A DNA stretch of 64,000 nucleotides from Vitrella brassicaformis CCMP3155. Lineage: Eukaryota; Protista; Chromerida. The first letter of the stretch is position 1. Each line of letters opens with the position of its first letter. The translations under genes and the position numbers were made by a program. Shown here piece by piece: positions 323 to 21,499 of the stretch. A model generated the notes under the pieces. That model had not been told where the DNA came from and searched no databases. It saw only the letters and a program-made list of their open reading frames with translations. The DNA lies in the NCBI GenBank assembly GCA_001179505.1, contig CDMY01000982.1, positions 62,001 to 126,000 on the forward strand. Reading direction: 5' to 3'.

Positions 323-3300
323 ATGGCCTCTCCTCTTGGCAAGTTGAGCATCCGTGTCCGCAACAAGGCCCTATCGAGAGCCCATGTTCGTGTGGTGGAG
401 GCGAGGGAGCGGAAGACAGTCGAGCAGGAGCTCGAGAAGGCCGTGGAAAAGGGGGAGAAGATGGAGCGGGGGGGTGGAGTCACGGCTGGGTTTGGCGGCG
501 TTGAGATTGGACTGGAGGCAAACAGAGGCACAGAAATACGTGCGTGAGCATCGCCATGATCAGCACACAAAGGGCCTCTCAGTCTGCATCAATTGATTGT
601 TCAGGTGAGAAGACAGAGGAGAAGAGCTTCGTTCGCATCGAGTATGGCAAGCTGAAGGAGTCAAGCGACTGGTGAGACAGATAGACGCTGAATGCCTAGC
701 ACAAAAGACAGCTGTGTCTTTTTGTGAATCATATCATGTACAAGGACGACGATTGATCCCGGCAGAGACGCCACTTTGTCGAGTTTCGAATGGACCTACA
801 TCTCTATTGTGATTGGTTCGTTCTGACAGCAACCAAGATGATCCATCAGGCGCCATTGTCACATTGGAATGCCTCTGTCGCAGAAGACTCCGCCTATCAG
901 CTGCTCAACCAACTCATACACCCAGAAGAGCACCCCAATGGCATCGCAATCATAAGGGTGAGGCGAACCCACTACTGCAGATGCAGAACCATTCCAGCCA
1001 TCGTGCTGTCTGTTCGGCACAGGCCAACCCCCCATATGTTTCGCTTCTGGCCGAGACCATCGAGGCGGCGAATATCGAGGCCAAAGAGGCAGCCTTTCGC
1101 CTGAACAATGTCGCCACAAAGCTTGTTTTGACATCGAAAAGCATGGCTCGTGGTGTGTCAGTCGGACTCGAAAAGAAGAAAGGGCGGGAGGCACATGAGG
1201 AGGCCGACGCCTCGCAGCTGTGGATTTGGCAGATGGACACTTTCTGCCCGAAGGACGCTTTCCGTCTGGTGCCGAAGGCTTTCCCTGACAAGACACTGGC
1301 GGTGAGCCCATTGATGGGCAACAAGCTTGTTGTCGCCTCGCCAACGGCCAAGACAGACGCCATGAACACCAAGGGAGAGGCGAAATTCGAGCAGTGGATC
1401 ATGGAGACAGCCGAGATGCAAGACATCTTCCAGCCAATGGCAGGAGCCCTGTGTGGCTCGCTGTGCTGCCAGCCCTCCAAGGAACAGCTGCTCGTGTCGC
1501 CCGACATTCAATTCGAGCAGGGGAATGAGGAGAGGCGGGGGAGCAGCAAGTTTGATGACGAGACGGTGAGCCTCAAGTGTGTCGGTCTGCCGGATTGTGT
1601 GGTGGGTGTCAAGACCTCCGGCAATATCAAGAGTCTGGTGCTGATGAAGAAAGACAGGGGGGTCCCAATGGAGGCCCTGTGGTGTTGCAGCCAGCCAACC
1701 AAAACAGTCAGCACCAGCTATGGCAGCCAGCGATACTACTTTATTATGCTTTACTTGCAGGTCAGCCTTTTCGAAGCTTGTGCGGAGGGTCATAAGGAAG
1801 CTGTGCTGCAAATAATCAAAGCCAAAGGCATAAAGTGCTTGCAGGAAGCCGACGAGGTGAGACACAGCTGTACGACACGTGCTTCATCTACAATGGGGCG
1901 AGCATTGGTGTTCGGTGGGTGAATTGCAGGAAGGATTCACACCGCTGCACTACGCCGCCCAAAATGGCCATGAGGACATCTGCAGAGACATTGTGCTTAA
2001 GGGCGGCAAAGACCTCATCAAAAAGCAGACGAAAGTCCAGGTGAGCCAAGGACTGACAGCATAGGAAATGCAAGAGGCGCTCATCTTGACCTCTTTCAGG
2101 GCGAGCCTACCGTGCTGCATCTGGCGGCTAAAAAGGGTCGTATGAAGGTTGTGACGATACTGCTCGAGTTGGGAGGGGTCGATCTCTTGACACTCAAAGA
2201 TCCGGTCCGAGATATCTGTGTGTCTCGTTGTCTGATACGTTTTCCTTTCTGTCGTTGCAGCAAGGTGACACACCGTTTCATAATGCTGCGCTGGCTGGTC
2301 ACGTCGGTGTGCTGAAGGCGATGCACGCCAAGGGGGGCAGGCCACTGCTGGACCAACAGGGATGGGTAAGAGGAAGACACAGCTGCAACGGATGCCGACC
2401 TGTTCTATATGGGTGCAGTATGGCAACTGTGCCATCCACTGGGCAGCTCAGAAGGGTCATGTGGATGCGGTCAACTTGTTTATGGAGTGGGGCGGAATAC
2501 AGAAAGAGCTCCAACGGCGCGATAAGGTGGGAAATGTCACATGCAGTGCATCAGCCGATAGGATGTCTTGCTGTATAGGACGACAGCGCACCCTTCCACA
2601 TGGCTGCGTATTTTGGTCACGTCGGTGTGCTGAGGGCGATGCACGCCAAGAGGGGCAATGCACTGCTTGACCAACAGGGAAAGGTGGGAAGACACAGCTG
2701 CCACTGAGGTCTACACACTTTCTGGTGTATATTGTGCAGTTTGGCTTCTTTGCCATCCACTGGGCAGCCTGCTCAGCAGCCTACAATGGTCATGTTGGTG
2801 CCGTCAACTTGTTGATGGAGCTTGGACGAATAGCGGAGCTCAGCAAACGCGACGGGGTCCTCCCCTTCTCGCACACACTCATCGGTCAAGAAACCGTCTC
2901 CTACTGTGTCTGTGTCGTGCTATATTAGAACAACAATACACCCTTCCACATCGCTGCGATGAATGGTCAAGTGGCTGTGTTGATGGCGATGCACGCCAAA
3001 GGGGGCAGGCCGCTGCTGGACCAACACTCAAACGTAGGCGAGACACGGCTGCCACTGAGGTCTACACACTTCCTGGTATATATTGTGCAGAGTGGCGACT
3101 TTGCCATCCACTGGGCAGCCTACTATGGTCATCTTGATGCGGTCAACTTGTTTATGGAGCTTGGAGGAACAGCAGAGCTCAGCAAACGCGACGGGGTCCT
3201 CTCCTTCTCGCACACACTCATCGGTCACAAAAACCGTCTCCTACTGTGTCTGTGTCGTGCTGTGTTAGAACAACGACACGCCGTTCCACGTCGCTGCGCG

Positions 3301-4677
3301 TGGTGGTCACGTCGGCGTGCTGAGGGCGATGCACGCCAAGGGGGGCAATGCCCTGCTGGAACAACAGGGACAGGTGAGAGGAGAGACACAGCGCAACAGA
3401 CAGATCTGTACTCCGGGTGTATGTTGTGTGCAGGGTGGCTTCTACCCCATTCACTTGGCAGCTGGGAAGGGTCATGTTGATGCGGTCAACTTGTTGGTGG
3501 AGCTAGGCGGCCGCAAAGAACTCGACAAGCGCAATGAAGTGGGAAGAACAGCTAGAATTGTCCACTGTGTCGCTAATGCTGATGGTTATGTAGAACAACA
3601 ACACACCCTTTCACAGTGCTGCCATGAATGGTCACGTCGCTGTGCTGAAGGTCATGCACGCCAAGGGGGGCAATCGGCTGCTGGACCAACAGGGAGCGGT
3701 GAGAGGAGAGACACAGTTGCAACAGACAGATCTGTACTCCGGGTGTATGTTGTGTGCAGGGTGGCTTCTACGTCATTCACTTGGCAGCTCAGCAGGGTCA
3801 TGTCGATGCGGTCAACGTGTTGATGGAGCTGGGCGGAATAGCGGAGCTCGGCAAACGCGACGGGGTCCTCCCATCTCTCGCACGCACTGGCCAGATATAC
3901 AGCGTCTGTCTTTGTGCTCTTGTGGTTGTGCAGGTCAACGATACACCCTTTCACAAAGCTGCGTTTGTTGGTCATGTCGATGTCCTGAAGGCGATGCACG
4001 CCAAGGGGGGCAATACGCTGCTCGACCAGCAGGGAACGGTGGGAGGAGAGACACAGCTGCAACAGACAGATCTGTACTCCGTGTGTATGTTGTGTGCAGT
4101 TTGGCTACTATGCCATTCACATCGCAGCTCAGGAGGGTCATGTTGATGCGGCCAACCTGTTGGTGGAGCTAAGCGGAATAGCAGAGCTCAGCAAACGCGA
4201 TAAAGTCCTCCCATCTCTCACGGACCGCGTCGGTTGGAATGTCTATCTTGCTTTCTTTGTCTTGATGGCTGCTGTAGGACAACGCTACACCGTTCCACGT
4301 CGCTGCGCTGGATGGTCACGTCGGTGTGCTGAAGGCGATGCACGCCAAGGGGGGCAATGGGCTGCTGGACCAACAGGATGATGTGAGAGAGGAAGAGGGT
4401 GATATCAACAGACAGAATCACATTGCGTGTTCTGTGTGTGCATTTTGGCCATTTCCCCATCCACTTGGCAGCTTGGAAGGGCCACGTTGAAGCCGTCAAA
4501 CTGTTGGTGTCCTGGGGGGGCGTTCAGATGCCCAGCAAGAAAACCAATAAGGTGCAGTTTCGTGCGTGACTCGTCGCTTTTGTCTCAGCACATGTGTTGC
4601 GTGTTATGCAGGGCAAGACTCCACTGGACATGGCGGAGAGTGACGAGATGCGCAAACTGCTCAACAGCTACAGATAG
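323..4677 (+). CDS. Multi-exon gene: uncharacterised N-terminal domain followed by ~18 ankyrin repeats; 5' structure uncertain, may start upstream
   Basis: Spliced exons give EGFTPLHYAAQNGHEDIC, GEPTVLHLAAKKGRMKVV, then alternating TPFHxAAxxGHVxVL / AIHxAAxxGHVDAVNL repeats and a C-cap [21 protein letters not shown] (TAG 4675-4677). GT-AG phase-0 introns separate the repeats. The N-terminal exons (323-1740) could not be fully resolved. Confidence 0.8.
2261..4551 (+). repeat. Tandem array of 7 exon-intron-exon-intron units (~320-350 bp), each encoding two ankyrin repeats
   Basis: A-type exons start at 2261, 2579, 2929, 3269, 3594, 3934 and 4278. Intron sequences also recur (e.g. gagacacagctgcaacagacagatctgtactcc; gtcctcccctnctcgcacacactcatcggtca). 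Confidence 0.95.
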
Positions 4678-15047: not shown

Positions 15048-16506
15048 ATGAACGGCGATTCGGCTCATCACGCGTATCACGTTGGCCCGAAGGGCCGCGT
15101 GTTCAAGCGCCGTCCCGCCTTGCCGTGCTACGACAGCCCGCCCCAGACACGCGTGCCGCGAGATCTGCTCGACGCCGTCAGCAGCGACCCAGACATGCAG
15201 CTGGTGGCATCATTTCAAGTGCCCAGGAGCGACGGCCGGGCCTTTCGAGTGCTGAAAGGGCAGCTCTGCCGGTTTGTGGTCAACGAGGGCAGTCAAGTGG
15301 GGGACGGTACTTAAGCAGACTCATTAAAACACTGGCACAATGGATGGATGGGTTCATGTGGTGTGTGGTGTGATTGTCAGTGAATGTGTGGAACTTGCAC
15401 AACCACAAGGAGCGGTTCTACTCTGGCAAGACGCGGCAGCTGCACGCGTCCCACCTGACGGCTTACGACCGGCTGTGGAGCTGCATGCCCTTCGAACGAC
15501 CCATGGCCACTAGTAAGCACACTATAAACACGCGCATCACACGCGCATTTCGTGAGCCTCCGTCTCTCTCTGTGTGGGTGTGTGGGTGTCTTGTGTATGT
15601 TTTTAATCGATCAGTCACTGTCGACACGATAGCTTATGGTTGGGACGAGGACGGCGCGGGAGTGCATGACGTCATCGGCACACGTGAGAGAGTGAGAGAG
15701 AGGAACGGCTCGCTCTAGACTCTGAGATGGATTCCTGGACGAACACGGTGTGCGTATCTGTTGCTGGATGGCCGCAGGATGCGATCCTTACATTCACGAG
15801 CGGCTGACGGGCAAGAGCCACGGCACCACGTGCCATGAGAACATCACCAGGGCCATCAAACCCTTCGGACTCACAGAGCGCGACGTGCACGACGTGAGCA
15901 AGGGAGCAGCTGCGTGTGTGCATGTGAGATGGGTGATGTGATTGATGAGTGTAGGTGTTCAACATCTTTATGTGCACTGGCTTCGACCCAAAGAGCCACA
16001 CCTACTTTGCCAAGGGCAGCCCAGCCGTGAGCTATGCACAAACGCCGCATGAAACCTCCCGTCCTACACCACAGTGGTGTTGCGTGTCTGTCTTGATTCA
16101 GGAGGTGGGCGACGCCATAGAGATGCTTGCCGAGTTCGATCTGCTCGTCGCTCTCAGCTCCTGCCCACAGGGGGACGTATCAATCCCTTGGTAAACATAA
16201 ACACGCCACCACACCATCGACACACCGATCTCACCCAAGTGCCCTTCTTGTCATGTCAGCGGTCAGCCCGTCCCCGATTCGGTGACCTTCCCCCTCTTGG
16301 TGGAGATCCGGCAGCCCTCACAGGCCACCCTGCAGCAGTACTTCGCGTGGAGCGACCCGACCACGTCTCTGCCGTCGCTGCCGTGTGCTGACGAGCAGGA
16401 CGCCGCACCATTGGTGGAGAGGGACGGGTTGGGAGCGGTGCTGGGGGCGAAGGGGTCTGAGGCGCCCAAGCGGTCTGATAGCGGTACGCTGCTGCTCGGC
16501 CAGTGA
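15048..16506 (+). CDS. DUF1989 (urea carboxylase-associated family) protein
   Basis: VPRSDGRAFRVLKGQLCRFVVNEGSQVGD, WNLHNHKERFYSGKTRQLHASHLTAYDRLWS, YGWDEDGAGVHDVIGTR, CDPY...CHENITRAIKPFGLTERDVHD, NIFMCTGF, EMLAEFDLLVALSSCPQGDVS. GT-AG introns throughout. Confidence 0.85.
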
Positions 16507-16942: not shown

Positions 16943-19900
16943 ATGCCTGCTCGAGCTTCCACCGCACCAGGCCCCTGTCCAGCGGCGTGTCATCGTAGAC
17001 GGCAAAGTCCCCTTGAGCTCCGATGCAAAGGAGGCGAACGACGGGAGATCGAGCTCGTGAACGAACGCCAAGATGGTGTCGCCAGCTGCCCTCCCTCCCC
17101 CCACCTCCGAAGTAATCATGCTTCGACGAGATCTCCGAGACGCGCGCTAACCCTGGGCCAGCCCCCAGTCTTCCCCCGGCCCCCCCCNNNNNNNNNNNNN
17201 NNNNNNNNNNNNNNNNNNNNNNNNNNNNNNNNNNNNNNNNNNNNNNNNNNNNNNNNNNNNNNNNNNNNNNNNNNNNNNNNNNNNNNNNNNNNNNNNNNNN
17301 NNNNNNNNNNNNNNNNNNNNNNNNNNNNNNNNNNNNNNNNNNNNNNNNNNNNNNNNNNNNNNNNNNNNNNNNNNNNNNNNNNNNNNNNNNNNNNNNNNNN
17401 NNNNNNNNNNNNNNNNNNNNNNNNNNNNNNNNNNNNNNNNNNNNNNNNNNNNNNNNNNNNNNNNNNNNNNNNNNNNNNNNNNNNNNNCCCCCCCCCCCCC
17501 CCCCGCCCCCACGCCCTGTCACCCTCCCGTCATGTTCGGAGGTGTAATCAGGTCGGATGACCTCACTGTCGAGGACAAGATGCTTGGTCAGCGGGAGAAC
17601 ATCACACATCATCACACGTGTTTGTTTGAAGGCGCCACTGATGAATGTGTTCTTCGTGTGTCGGCAGCTTGGCAGGCGAGGGCGGGGAAGGGACGGTGTA
17701 CAGGGGGGTGTGGCGAAGTCAAGATGGAAATATTTCCGTGGCTGTCAAGACGTACAAACCCAACGAGGAGCTTGACCGCGAGGTAGTACGGCTACAGAGC
17801 ATGTGTGCGTAGCCATCATGACGGCCACGTGTGCATGTCTGCGTCACGGTGTGCAGTCACAGTTCATGGAGGTGCTGGAGGAGGCCATGCCGATGCTCCC
17901 CCTTCGCCACCCCAACATAGTGCGGCTGCTGGGCGTCTCCCAGCAGACACGGCAAATACCGCCTCGTTATCGTCACGGGTGACCATCCTTCGCTTCATTC
18001 AGCTCCCTGTCGGTACGTCGTTTGTTCTTCTCAGAGTTGTGTACGGGCGGCTCTCTGGCCTCCTATTTGGCAAAATATGGAGCCCCACCGCCGGAGCTGC
18101 GAGACAGATTCATGAGAGAGGTGCATGAAGCGCACAGAAGGAGTGTCGTCTGTGTCTCCATCTATAAGTGTGTGCAATGGATCTCAGATATGTGCAGGTG
18201 TCCAGTACTTGCATGATCAGAAGATCGTGCACCGCGACTTGAAACCCGAAAACATACTGGTCTCAACACATCACTCTTGCCATTTACTCTTGCATTACTA
18301 GGATCAACACGCGTGTGTTCGCCCGTATTTGTCAGCTGACGGAGGGTCTCGTCATCAAAATATCGGATTTCGGGATAAGCCGGGGCGCCGAGAGAAAAAC
18401 CACTGTGACCTCAGGTATCTGCAGAAAACAAAAGGGTGCGAACGAGACACACATGCTTTCGCGCTGCAGCTCTTGGAACCGCCCAGTATATGCCTCCCGA
18501 GGGCATCGAAACGACTTGTAAGTATACCGAGATAAGATTATATACTTACATTGATATGAATCACTGTGTCTGGTGCATTCATAGTGGGCAAACTGACGAC
18601 GAAAGCTGACATTTGGGCTGTTGGCGGCATCGCAATTGAGCTACACGGAGGTAAGAGACAAGAAACAGCACAGCTGCAACACGAGACGGCAATTTGGTGC
18701 AGGCCGACCGCCTTTCGAGGGCCTGGGGCAGATACCGATCGGCCGCAAAGTCGTCGACAAAAAGGAGGCGAGATATTTTCACATCTGCTTGTCGGACTGA
18801 TTCGGCCCGAACATGCCTGCATCCGCTTTGTTTCGATTAGATCCCTGACATCCCGCAATCCCTGCCCTCGCATGTCAAGAACGCCATCAAGGCACGCCTA
18901 ACAAAAACCACAGCATTCCGTGCTCTTACTGTCTCTCCATGGTGATCAGAGTTGTTTCGCCTTCAAAGCGGCCAATCGGCCAACAGCCACACAGGTCGTA
19001 TGAGCTTTCATCAAGGGTGAGAAAGCGCTGGGGCTCACATACTCGGTGTGTGTACATGGTAGTTTCTCGATCAACTGGGGCTGTCTCCTTCGATGTCAAG
19101 CGGACAGCCGACGGATACGACTGAGGAACCGCCGAAGAGCCCATGGGAATGGCTATTTGGCGGAAAACCAAAGCGACAAGGTCCGTCTACACGTCTTCAA
19201 TTGCAAGTCGCCAACATAGGGGGTTTACGCTAATGAGCTTCTTTCGGCCTACAGATGCTCTTTCGCTTCCTGCGGCTCGTGGCTCCACCGGCAATGTGTC
19301 TCCCGCCGGCCATTCACCGGCCGTCCACATGAGCATGTCCAACACCGTGACCGGGCCGCCCAGCACTGCGTCTCCCGCTCAGTCGGCCATTGAGGGAAAG
19401 GTGAGTGAGACGGGCAGGTAGGCTTTCCATCCCACATGTACCTGCACAATCACATGACGTGTTGGAGTGTGGTGGTGTGCATCTGGCAGTTGGGGTCTAC
19501 TACGTCCACCACGGCTCCTCCACCTCGCTACTACGTCCCTCCCTCCACCACATACCCGCCCGGTAGCTACGTCCCTCCCTCCACCACATACCCGCCCGGT
19601 AATCACAGGAAGGGGGCAGGAGGGAGGGAAGATCAGCAGAGATCTGACGGCATCTGTGGACACACAGGCGGGAAAGCATGTCGGGAAGCCAGCTACGATT
19701 GCCAACTGTGTCAACTGTGTGTGTATGGTGTCCTTCCTCAGTTGATCCGTCGTCTGCAGGTTTCAGCTACGGCACGTACCCGTCACCGTACGGCATGCCG
19801 CTTGGTCCGTACGGGTACCCGGCTGGTTCGTATACCCATGGGTACCCGGCTGGTCCGTATGGCTACCCGGCCTACCCGCCCCATCTCGTGCAGACCAATA

Positions 19901-20788
19901 TCTTTGACGCAGCCAAGGTCGGTGATGTGCAGTCCGTCACTTTGCTGATCGCACAAAATGAAAAGTGCCTCGACACAAGAGACAACGACGGGGTGATGCA
20001 TTGAGAAGACGACACAGGTGGAATCAGTGGTCTGTGTTTTTCATTCCTGCAGAACACGCCCTTCCACGACGCTGCGGCTTATGGTCACGTCGGTGTGCTG
20101 ATGGCGATGCACGCCAAGAACGGCAAGCCGCTGCTGGATCAAAAGGATAACGTGAGACAGGCATACCTTGCAACACATGGCGGATTCTCGAACACATGGT
20201 CATTTGTGTGCAGAAGGGCGACTATGCCATTCACTGGGCAGCTGACAAAGGTCATGTTGATGTGGTGAACTTGTTGGTGGAGCTAGGCGGCCGCGAAGAA
20301 CTCGACAAGCGCGATGAAGTGCGAAGAACAGCTAGAATTGACCACTGTGTCGCTCGTGGCTGTAGCGAGCCACCCTGCTGGTTTTGTAGAACAACTGCAC
20401 ACCCTTCCACCTCGCTGCGTTTTGTGGTCACGTGGATGTGCTGAAGGCGATCCACGCTAAGGGAGGCAAGCTGGACCAACAGACCAAGGTGCATTGACAG
20501 ACCGGCAGTTTACTGGATTCTTGCGTGTCTGTATGCATTTGTGTGCAGAGTGGAGAGTACCCATTCACTTGGCAGCTTGGAAAGGCCACGTTGAAGCCGT
20601 CAAGCTGTTGGTGTCCTTGGGGGGCGTTCAGATGCTCAGCAAGAAAGCAAATGACGTGAGCAAGAAGAGGGCACTCGTCGCTTGTGTCTCATCTGTTCAT
20701 CACGTGTGTGTGTCTTATGCAGGGCAGGACTCCGCTGGACGTGGCGCAGAGTGACGAGATGCGCAAACTGCTCAACAGCTACACATAG
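16943..20788 (+). CDS. TKL-type protein kinase + Pro/Tyr/Gly-rich linker + C-terminal ankyrin repeats; contains an assembly gap and an apparent +1 frameshift; start uncertain
   Basis: LG|[16 protein letters not shown] (17670-17783), [68 protein letters not shown], then [13 protein letters not shown] and ankyrin exons ending [21 protein letters not shown] (20786-20788). Confidence 0.8.
17188..17487. other. Assembly gap (300 N) flanked by poly-C tracts
   Basis: Run of exactly 300 N with C homopolymers on both sides. Confidence 1.
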
Positions 20789-21499
20789 CCAGTCTCTTGT
20801 CGGGTTTAGGCCGTTGTTTGTCGGTGTGTCGCTCATCTTGCTGTGTCGATTAAGGTGTGGGCTGTTGTGTGTCGGTGTGTCGTTGCGTTTGTCTTCCTGT
20901 CGTTGCTCATAAGCATGCTGTGACATACCGGGACTGAGCAATGTCGAGAAACAATCCACATGTGTCTTTCTCTGCCAAGGTCGACCAGATGTGTCTTATG
21001 TCGGCATCCGGTGCCTTCCAGTGCAGCTAAGTGTCCGACGTGAGTGAGTGGACTGCCGTGCGTGCATCGCTATATGGCTTCAAAGTACCACATCAGCCCC
21101 CCGGCTGTCGGTGTCACTCATCCACACACACAAATGAATGTCCCAACGCATGCACCCAAAAATACCCACACACACACCCATTCTTCACAAGCAGCTGTCT
21201 GTCTTTGGTGTGTTGACGTATGTGTCCTCAACCCCCCCCCTAGCTCCCGACCAACCGAGTGACTGCTTTGAGCAGTAGCTACTACGTCATTGTATTGTGT
21301 GTCCACCTGTCTGTCTCCTGGGACCACTTTAAGTAAGCCTTATTCATGTCTGCCTGTCAGCCAGCCAGCCGCCATACCGGCCGGCCGGCCGGCCGGCCGC
21401 CCACTTATGCACTGATATAGAGAGGAGAAAAGGGAAGAGAGAGTCGATAGCGATAAAAGGACAGCTGGTCTGTCTGTCAGCCCACCATCCATCCATCCG

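Follow-up and report, generated by a model that had tools for sequence, protein, structure and literature searches.

Candidate immune receptors of the brown alga Ectocarpus, the leucine-rich repeat (LRR) ROCO proteins and the NB-ARC-TPR proteins, combine phase-0 repeat exons, recombination and diversifying selection (PMC3341825; PMC11378527). Little is known about how the free-living relatives of apicomplexans recognise viruses, parasites and neighbours. We analysed a window of 64,000 nucleotides from Vitrella brassicaformis CCMP3155 (contig CDMY01000982.1, positions 62,001 to 126,000), in which an array of ankyrin exons belongs to the gene model CEM38357.1 (988 aa), whose locus is identical to window positions 323-4677 on the plus strand. 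An earlier note, made from the DNA alone, had described the array at 2261-4551 as a DARPin-like series with one repeat per exon and had suggested a diversifying recognition-receptor repertoire. We found that surface positions of this recently expanded array are under positive selection and that its framework is under purifying selection. CEM38357.1 is, in our judgement, rather probably a member of a diversifying family of intracellular binders under birth and death.

The array is real, and the gene is larger than the array: five N-terminal exons are followed by three leading ankyrin-type exons, seven A/B exon pairs and a capping exon (Table 1). The seven A exons have 105 nt each and the seven B exons 105-117 nt; all are multiples of 3 with an open frame and GT donors, and the array introns are in phase 0 and 52-73 nt long. 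Five single exons were tested and all match Pfam Ank PF00023 (E 6.5e-4 to 1.4e-7). The whole CEM38357.1 protein gives Pfam matches to ankyrin families only, and the PDB matches of its ankyrin part include NompC, ankyrin-1 and DARPins. AlphaFold on four repeats as a single sequence reached a pLDDT of 33. The earlier count of 14 in-frame phase-0 exons holds for lengths, frame and donors, but only 13 of the 14 acceptors are AG, the B7 acceptor (4441-4443) being CAT. The residues listed before for positions 10, 13 and 14 of the A and B exons are as described; the repeat, however, measures 35 aa and not 33, and the TPFH motif is confined to the A exons, whereas B exons read xAIH or xPIH and have three states only at position 10. 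Helix 1 of B2 is longer by four residues, and B1 and B7 each have an additional codon. Repeat positions 2 and 3, in the beta-turn, flank the exon border. By alignment, the introns of different units are homologous to one another, so the A exon, the B exon and the intron after each were copied as one block of ~340 nt. The shared phase of the array introns does not amount to 14 independent facts, because the phase is copied whenever a repeat is duplicated along with its intron.

Selection was analysed with our own codon-model code, not PAML, on nine A and eight B exons of the window (35 codons). Site models detected positive selection in the A exons (M1a-M2a, twice the log-likelihood difference, 2dL, 23.6; M8a-M8, 21.5), with positions 10, 13, 14, 1 and 2 selected, and in the B exons (12.9 in both comparisons), with positions 3 and 5 selected. 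Six surface positions (2, 3, 5, 10, 13, 14) were fixed in advance from a published library (PMC3308923). At these positions omega, the ratio of nonsynonymous to synonymous rates, was 4.0 in A and 2.7-3.1 in B, with framework values of 0.34 (A) and 0.46 (B). The signal is located in helix 1 of the A exons (omega 8.3) and in the turn of the B exons (omega 5.8). Null simulations ranging from none to free recombination reached the observed statistic in 0/120 cases for each of the A and B sets. A multi-nucleotide model allowing double and triple base changes kept the A exons at omega 3.3 (p 5e-4). The large N-terminal exon, used as a control, had omega 0.23 without a positive class.

The variable positions of the array repeats are the same six. 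Ankyrin positions 2, 3, 5, 10, 13 and 14 form the concave binding face. Of positions 1-26, these six also vary most in the 129 unrelated arrays of ankyrin repeats among our search hits, so the overlap with DARPin positions says little by itself; the pattern of variable places is a property of the ankyrin fold. The earlier comparison with DARPins is weakened to this extent: the positions coincide, but any ankyrin array would be expected to show it. DARPin and related libraries likewise vary these positions on a fixed scaffold, and their positions were taken from natural ankyrin variation, which makes the overlap with the Vitrella array expected (PMC3308923). Unlike them, the Vitrella array has a longer repeat of two types, and nothing indicates a library made inside a cell. 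Adenine-directed mutagenesis, similar to that of diversity-generating retroelements, was considered because T or C is the last base of many variable codons, and was rejected; positions 2 and 13 also vary over G-ending codons and no template was seen.

The array belongs to a multi-locus family, as the earlier note had anticipated. A/B arrays are present in at least six loci: two in the window, namely CEM38357.1 and a second gene in which the same cassette stands behind a kinase 16 kb from the CEM38357.1 array, together with CEM15501.1, CEM07856.1, CEL96646.1 and CEM31845/6. More distant arrays include CEM38514.1, CEM22051.1 and others. The exon-per-repeat design was mapped in five further genes, four of them A/B sister loci and the fifth more distant; they lie on five other contigs, and almost every repeat in them is one phase-0 exon. 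Named hits at 35 bits per repeat or above are all from Vitrella. Judged by titles and abstracts, none of the papers that mention Vitrella brassicaformis together with ankyrin deals with this family.

Some family members depart from the common design. In locus L005 (12452-12611) an A exon is interrupted by a 55-nt phase-0 intron directly after helix 1, an exception to the exon-per-repeat rule, and the joined reading occurs in the transcript-derived protein P0010. Residues 1-66 of P0010, the trefoil end, have no exact counterpart in the loci analysed, which points to another member of the family. B exons of L001 (10827-10961, 12293-12415) and L006 (13918-14046, 14444-14579, 15331-15459) have insertions of 6-10 residues of varied sequence after helix 1, in the same region as the B2 insertion of CEM38357.1; such variable loops may add to the binding face.

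Unit-by-unit comparison demonstrated that the nearest relative shifts along a unit. Unit 4 tracks unit 5 through the A-B intron (97%) and the start of the B exon, then the second gene 16 kb away (93%), the switch point lying between B-exon nucleotides 36 and 64. In units 2, 3 and 7 the nearest relative switches close to where the A exon ends. Testing incompatibility by distance gave a significant result (0/500 permutations), a signal to which uneven exon and intron rates could contribute. Exon 1 of CEM38357.1 is 94% identical to the CEM07856.1 locus, and its 3' end with flank is 92% identical to the CEM15501.1 locus. These similarities point to homologous exchange within and between genes over evolutionary time. 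Homologous exchange keeps the frame whether it falls inside or outside introns. The earlier idea of exon swapping stands as exchange between units and loci, visible in the mosaics; the mapped breakpoint, however, is inside an exon, so phase-0 introns are not required for the exchange.

The selection results have to be weighed against ordinary tandem expansion with a relaxed surface, in which folding and gene conversion hold the framework, the surface drifts neutrally, and the high omega values are a product of small sample size, mutations of several bases and reduced synonymous divergence. We regard this explanation as rather unlikely. Pairwise differences among A exons at codon positions 1-2 are 62% at the six surface sites and 10% in the framework, while fourfold sites differ by 18% and the following introns by 21%; the surface sites thus show roughly three times the divergence of the adjacent introns or of fourfold sites. 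At position 14 the third base is T in 9/9 A copies while bases 1-2 encode eight amino acids, and the recombination nulls never produced the observed values, which also argues against neutral drift. The third codon positions of variable A codons are also raised (46% vs 24%), and this, like the variability of the same six positions in the 129 unrelated arrays, is in line with drift.

Several further points weigh against a diversifying binder family. Under the multi-nucleotide model the B exons fall to omega 2.0, which is borderline (p 0.052). In 13 A and 13 B exons of 105 nt from other loci, the six sites have omega 1.1 (A) and 1.0 (B), non-surface sites have 0.24 (A) and 0.21 (B), and A position 13 alone is still significant. 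Drift would account for both the borderline B value and the sister arrays. The exon sets are small, with 8-9 exons of 35 codons each, and were run with our own codon code rather than PAML. The AlphaFold model of residues 1-371 is of low confidence (pLDDT 35), and a fold search with it gave a best Z of 3.1 and no match. Finally, each of the six family loci examined bears a lesion: CAT at the B7 acceptor in CEM38357.1, one base missing from the last B exon of the second window gene, a stop within an A exon in L004, a stop within a B exon in L001, a deletion in the N-terminal exons of L005, and a lost donor in L006 (CEL96646.1). The weaker signal of the sister arrays may reflect saturation hiding selection, or selection limited to young arrays. 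The excess of surface amino-acid change proposed earlier is supported by omega above 1 in the window array, but not in the older sister arrays, where omega is ~1 at the six sites as a set.

The lesions raise the alternative that CEM38357.1 is a decaying copy of a high-turnover family, with earlier selection on its repeats and a product that is now truncated or lost. This is compatible with the diversifying-binder explanation, and we give it serious weight while considering it less than probable. The public model avoids the B7 site through a phase-1 intron (4399-4471) without a homologue in other units, and retention of the homologous intron (4383-4443) would give a stop at 4488. The CAT acceptor, this stop and the B2 insertion in helix 1 are consistent with decay, as are the lesions of the second gene, CEM15501.1, CEM31845/6, CEM07856.1 and L006, whose cDNA has a stop at residue 456. 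On the other hand, 22 exons contain no stop or frameshift, framework omega is 0.3-0.5, exons 2-4 are spliced in a transcript-derived protein, and the CAT could be an assembly error.

That protein, P0228, corresponds to residues 1-135 of CEM38357.1 with one difference and includes exons that the closest sister locus is without; the 5' part of CEM38357.1 is therefore transcribed and spliced. A natural recombinant was considered for P0228 and rejected, since the gene switch falls at a 38-40 nt block common to three loci, as in assembly chimeras; beyond its CEM38357.1-like part it is probably such a chimera. In the same 5' region, the 68-nt phase-1 intron at window 816-883 is absent from three sister genes and is spliced out in the transcript-derived protein. 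Within it, 41 nt match, reversed, the end of a CEM15501.1 ankyrin intron (90%, E 2e-8), and the intron was possibly gained recently from an inverted family fragment.

Symmetric exons had led the earlier note to propose combinatorial use. Exon skipping or somatic shuffling, similar to Dscam or VLR, would give many binders per gene. The frame of this array would survive skips, alternative splicing has been reported for brown-algal ROCO LRR exons (PMC11378527), and one CEM15501.1 cDNA contig, with two introns kept, has fewer units than the genome. That shortage falls within near-identical units and, though ambiguous, is explained by assembly collapse. Both cDNA contigs of CEL96646.1, the 1274-aa sister gene, have their ankyrin exons in genomic order without skips, and the intron after the lost-donor exon is retained, as expected for introns of ~60 nt, leading to the stop at residue 456. 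No exon skipping was clearly seen in three cDNA contigs of two sister genes, where short-read contigs may miss rare isoforms, and a hidden Markov model scan of both strands of six loci detected no inverted or spare repeat exons on the minus strand; L004 has one in-line dead exon. The cDNA contigs match the reference genome exactly and so provide no second allele. Intron retention and colinear exons in the sister-gene cDNAs thus speak against the combinatorial proposal, which we find very improbable; the short CEM15501.1 contig leaves some ambiguity.

Two further features of the sister transcripts were noted. In cDNA contigs of L006 (11842-12138) and L004 (11957-12055) the intron after the third ankyrin exon is kept and reading terminates early, so that two or three repeats follow the N-terminal region. 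The L006 short form reflects a lesion, and L004, with intact-looking sites, possibly has a regulated short form. A cDNA contig in L008 (3964-4247) jumps from CEL96646.1 to the CEM31846.1 terminal exon at a common 43-nt block and is probably an assembly chimera.

A diversifying binder could arise as follows. The product would be a modular intracellular protein, with an orphan domain and a probable beta-trefoil followed by 17 ankyrin repeats and a cap. The ~340-nt two-repeat (A+B) unit multiplied with its introns, and units then exchanged segments mutually and with sister genes, with the framework kept by purifying selection and surface residues changing faster than neutral sites in this recently expanded array. 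Unequal crossing-over and gene conversion between similar repeats may create new binding surfaces over evolutionary time. New specificities may be selected because the partner, most plausibly a protein of a virus, parasite or competitor, is itself changing all the time. Binding may be relayed to the N-terminal module, the orphan domain and trefoil in CEM38357.1 and the kinase in the second gene. Copies are often born and damaged, and in CEM38357.1 the last repeat exon has apparently been deprived of its usual acceptor.

Table 1. Features of CEM38357.1 and of the second ankyrin gene (window positions)
Feature	Position	Strand	Remark
Exons 1-4, beta-rich orphan domain, aa 1-145	323-539, 605-671, 745-815, 884-957	+	amphipathic alternating segment aa 53-66
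Exon 5, probable beta-trefoil	1023-1706	+	three repeats with ends QLW, EQW, ALW
Three leading ankyrin-type exons	1761-1856, 1930-2040, 2100-2204	+	phase 0; family-wide conservation
A1 ankyrin exon	2261-2365	+	
B1 ankyrin exon, 108 nt	2419-2526	+	
A2 ankyrin exon	2579-2683	+	
B2 ankyrin exon, 117 nt	2740-2856	+	4-codon insertion within helix 1
A3 ankyrin exon	2929-3033	+	
B3 ankyrin exon	3091-3195	+	
A4 ankyrin exon	3269-3373	+	
B4 ankyrin exon, mosaic	3434-3538	+	5' part close to unit 5; 3' part and next intron close to second gene at 20.2 kb
A5 ankyrin exon	3594-3698	+	
B5 ankyrin exon	3760-3864	+	
A6 ankyrin exon	3934-4038	+	
B6 ankyrin exon	4100-4204	+	
A7 ankyrin exon	4278-4382	+	
B7 ankyrin exon	4444-4551	+	homologous acceptor position CAT instead of AG
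Terminal capping exon	4612-4677	+	with 3' flank 92% identity over 438 nt to CEM15501.1, other contig
Second gene	17670-20790	+	protein-kinase exons, proline/tyrosine-rich linker, same A/B cassette and terminal exon
Second gene cassette	A 20053-20151, B 20214-20318, A 20390-20488, B ~20549-20655, terminal exon from 20723		

In the second gene the kinase motifs HRDLKPEN and DFG were seen directly. Its last B exon is one base short compared with its sisters, and a second AG lies two bases downstream of the usual acceptor. Just upstream of this gene the window has an assembly gap of ~300 N (17188-17487) with C runs on its flanks. Exons at 15780-16500 presumably encode a DUF1989 (urea-carboxylase-associated) protein, and the neighbour gene on the minus strand from ~5470 is called a sodium/hydrogen exchanger (PF00999).

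The N-terminal region of CEM38357.1 has 371 aa, with intron phases 1, 2, 1, 0 and 0. Profile searches gave no Pfam or PDB match to aa 1-371, and its relatives are Vitrella proteins only in a length-limited search of at most 8000 candidates, so that kin elsewhere are possible. Residues 166-366 contain three repeats with QxW-like ends, and the Atlas model can be aligned along 141 residues with a ricin-type trefoil of 153 aa (TM 0.76); exon 5 probably encodes a beta-trefoil, without a Pfam hit. Residues 53-66 alternate in a manner resembling a membrane hairpin. This amphipathic segment would fit a sensor-gated or target-aimed pore former, in which the orphan hairpin inserts, the trefoil binds glycans and the ankyrins choose the trigger. 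The Atlas feature neighbours are MACPF, aerolysin/ETX (ETX/MTX2) and Toxin_10 lectin clusters (scores 0.84-0.88), 9 of the best 10 being in one clan and all below 0.9. When aa 1-150 are taken by themselves, agreement drops to 2 of the 10 best hits. Neither the sequence nor the structure (the latter from a low-confidence model) matched any pore former, and the N-terminus has no obvious hydrophobic signal peptide by eye. Pore formation by the orphan domain is only a lead, and we consider the pore-former explanation unlikely. Latrotoxins are secreted. Should the orphan domain form pores, the layout of pore domain plus ankyrin array is all that they would have in common with CEM38357.1: its ankyrin part matches latrotoxins as it does ankyrin-1 and NompC, and its N-terminal region has no similarity to them.

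The diversifying-binder explanation finds closer counterparts in fungal NLRs such as Podospora Pa_3_8560, which likewise have a conserved ankyrin framework, an inner helix and hairpin under positive selection, repeats that exchange with one another and varied N-terminal modules (PMC4986451). Unlike them, the Vitrella gene has no NACHT or NB-ARC domain by Pfam, and its repeat identity, 69% among A and 60% among B exons, is below the 85% cut-off of PMC4986451. With the ROCO receptors and the NB-ARC-TPR receptors of Ectocarpus it has in common one repeat per phase-0 exon (the B7 acceptor and the split L005 A exon being the Vitrella exceptions), intra- and intergenic recombination, dead exons, gene birth and death, and diversifying selection on the repeats, in Vitrella for this array and not for the older sister arrays as a set. 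In contrast to Ectocarpus, the Vitrella repeat is an ankyrin in alternating A/B pairs with introns of ~60 nt, ROC-COR and NB-ARC are missing (no Pfam match in aa 1-371), no inverted spare exons were seen in six loci, and the cDNAs are without clear alternative use of repeat exons.

As regards the recognition-receptor repertoire of the earlier note, surface selection, the gene family and the exchange are in its favour, while the lack of a NOD or ROC-COR domain and the broken acceptor are not; a receptor role, and by analogy with these systems a role of the family in defence, would be conceivable. A NOD-less Vitrella immune system, in which recombining, selected ankyrin cassettes would be interchangeable sensors coupled directly to effector modules (in one case a beta-trefoil with a new hairpin domain that inserts into membranes, in another a kinase), is a doubtful, speculative extension. 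Candidate genes and exact residues for testing are now named. Each ingredient has a precedent in the recombining, surface-selected repeat domains of brown algae and fungi, and a form of them in an alveolate that is built of ankyrins and has no nucleotide switch would, if true, be a further independent case of diversifying repeat domains.

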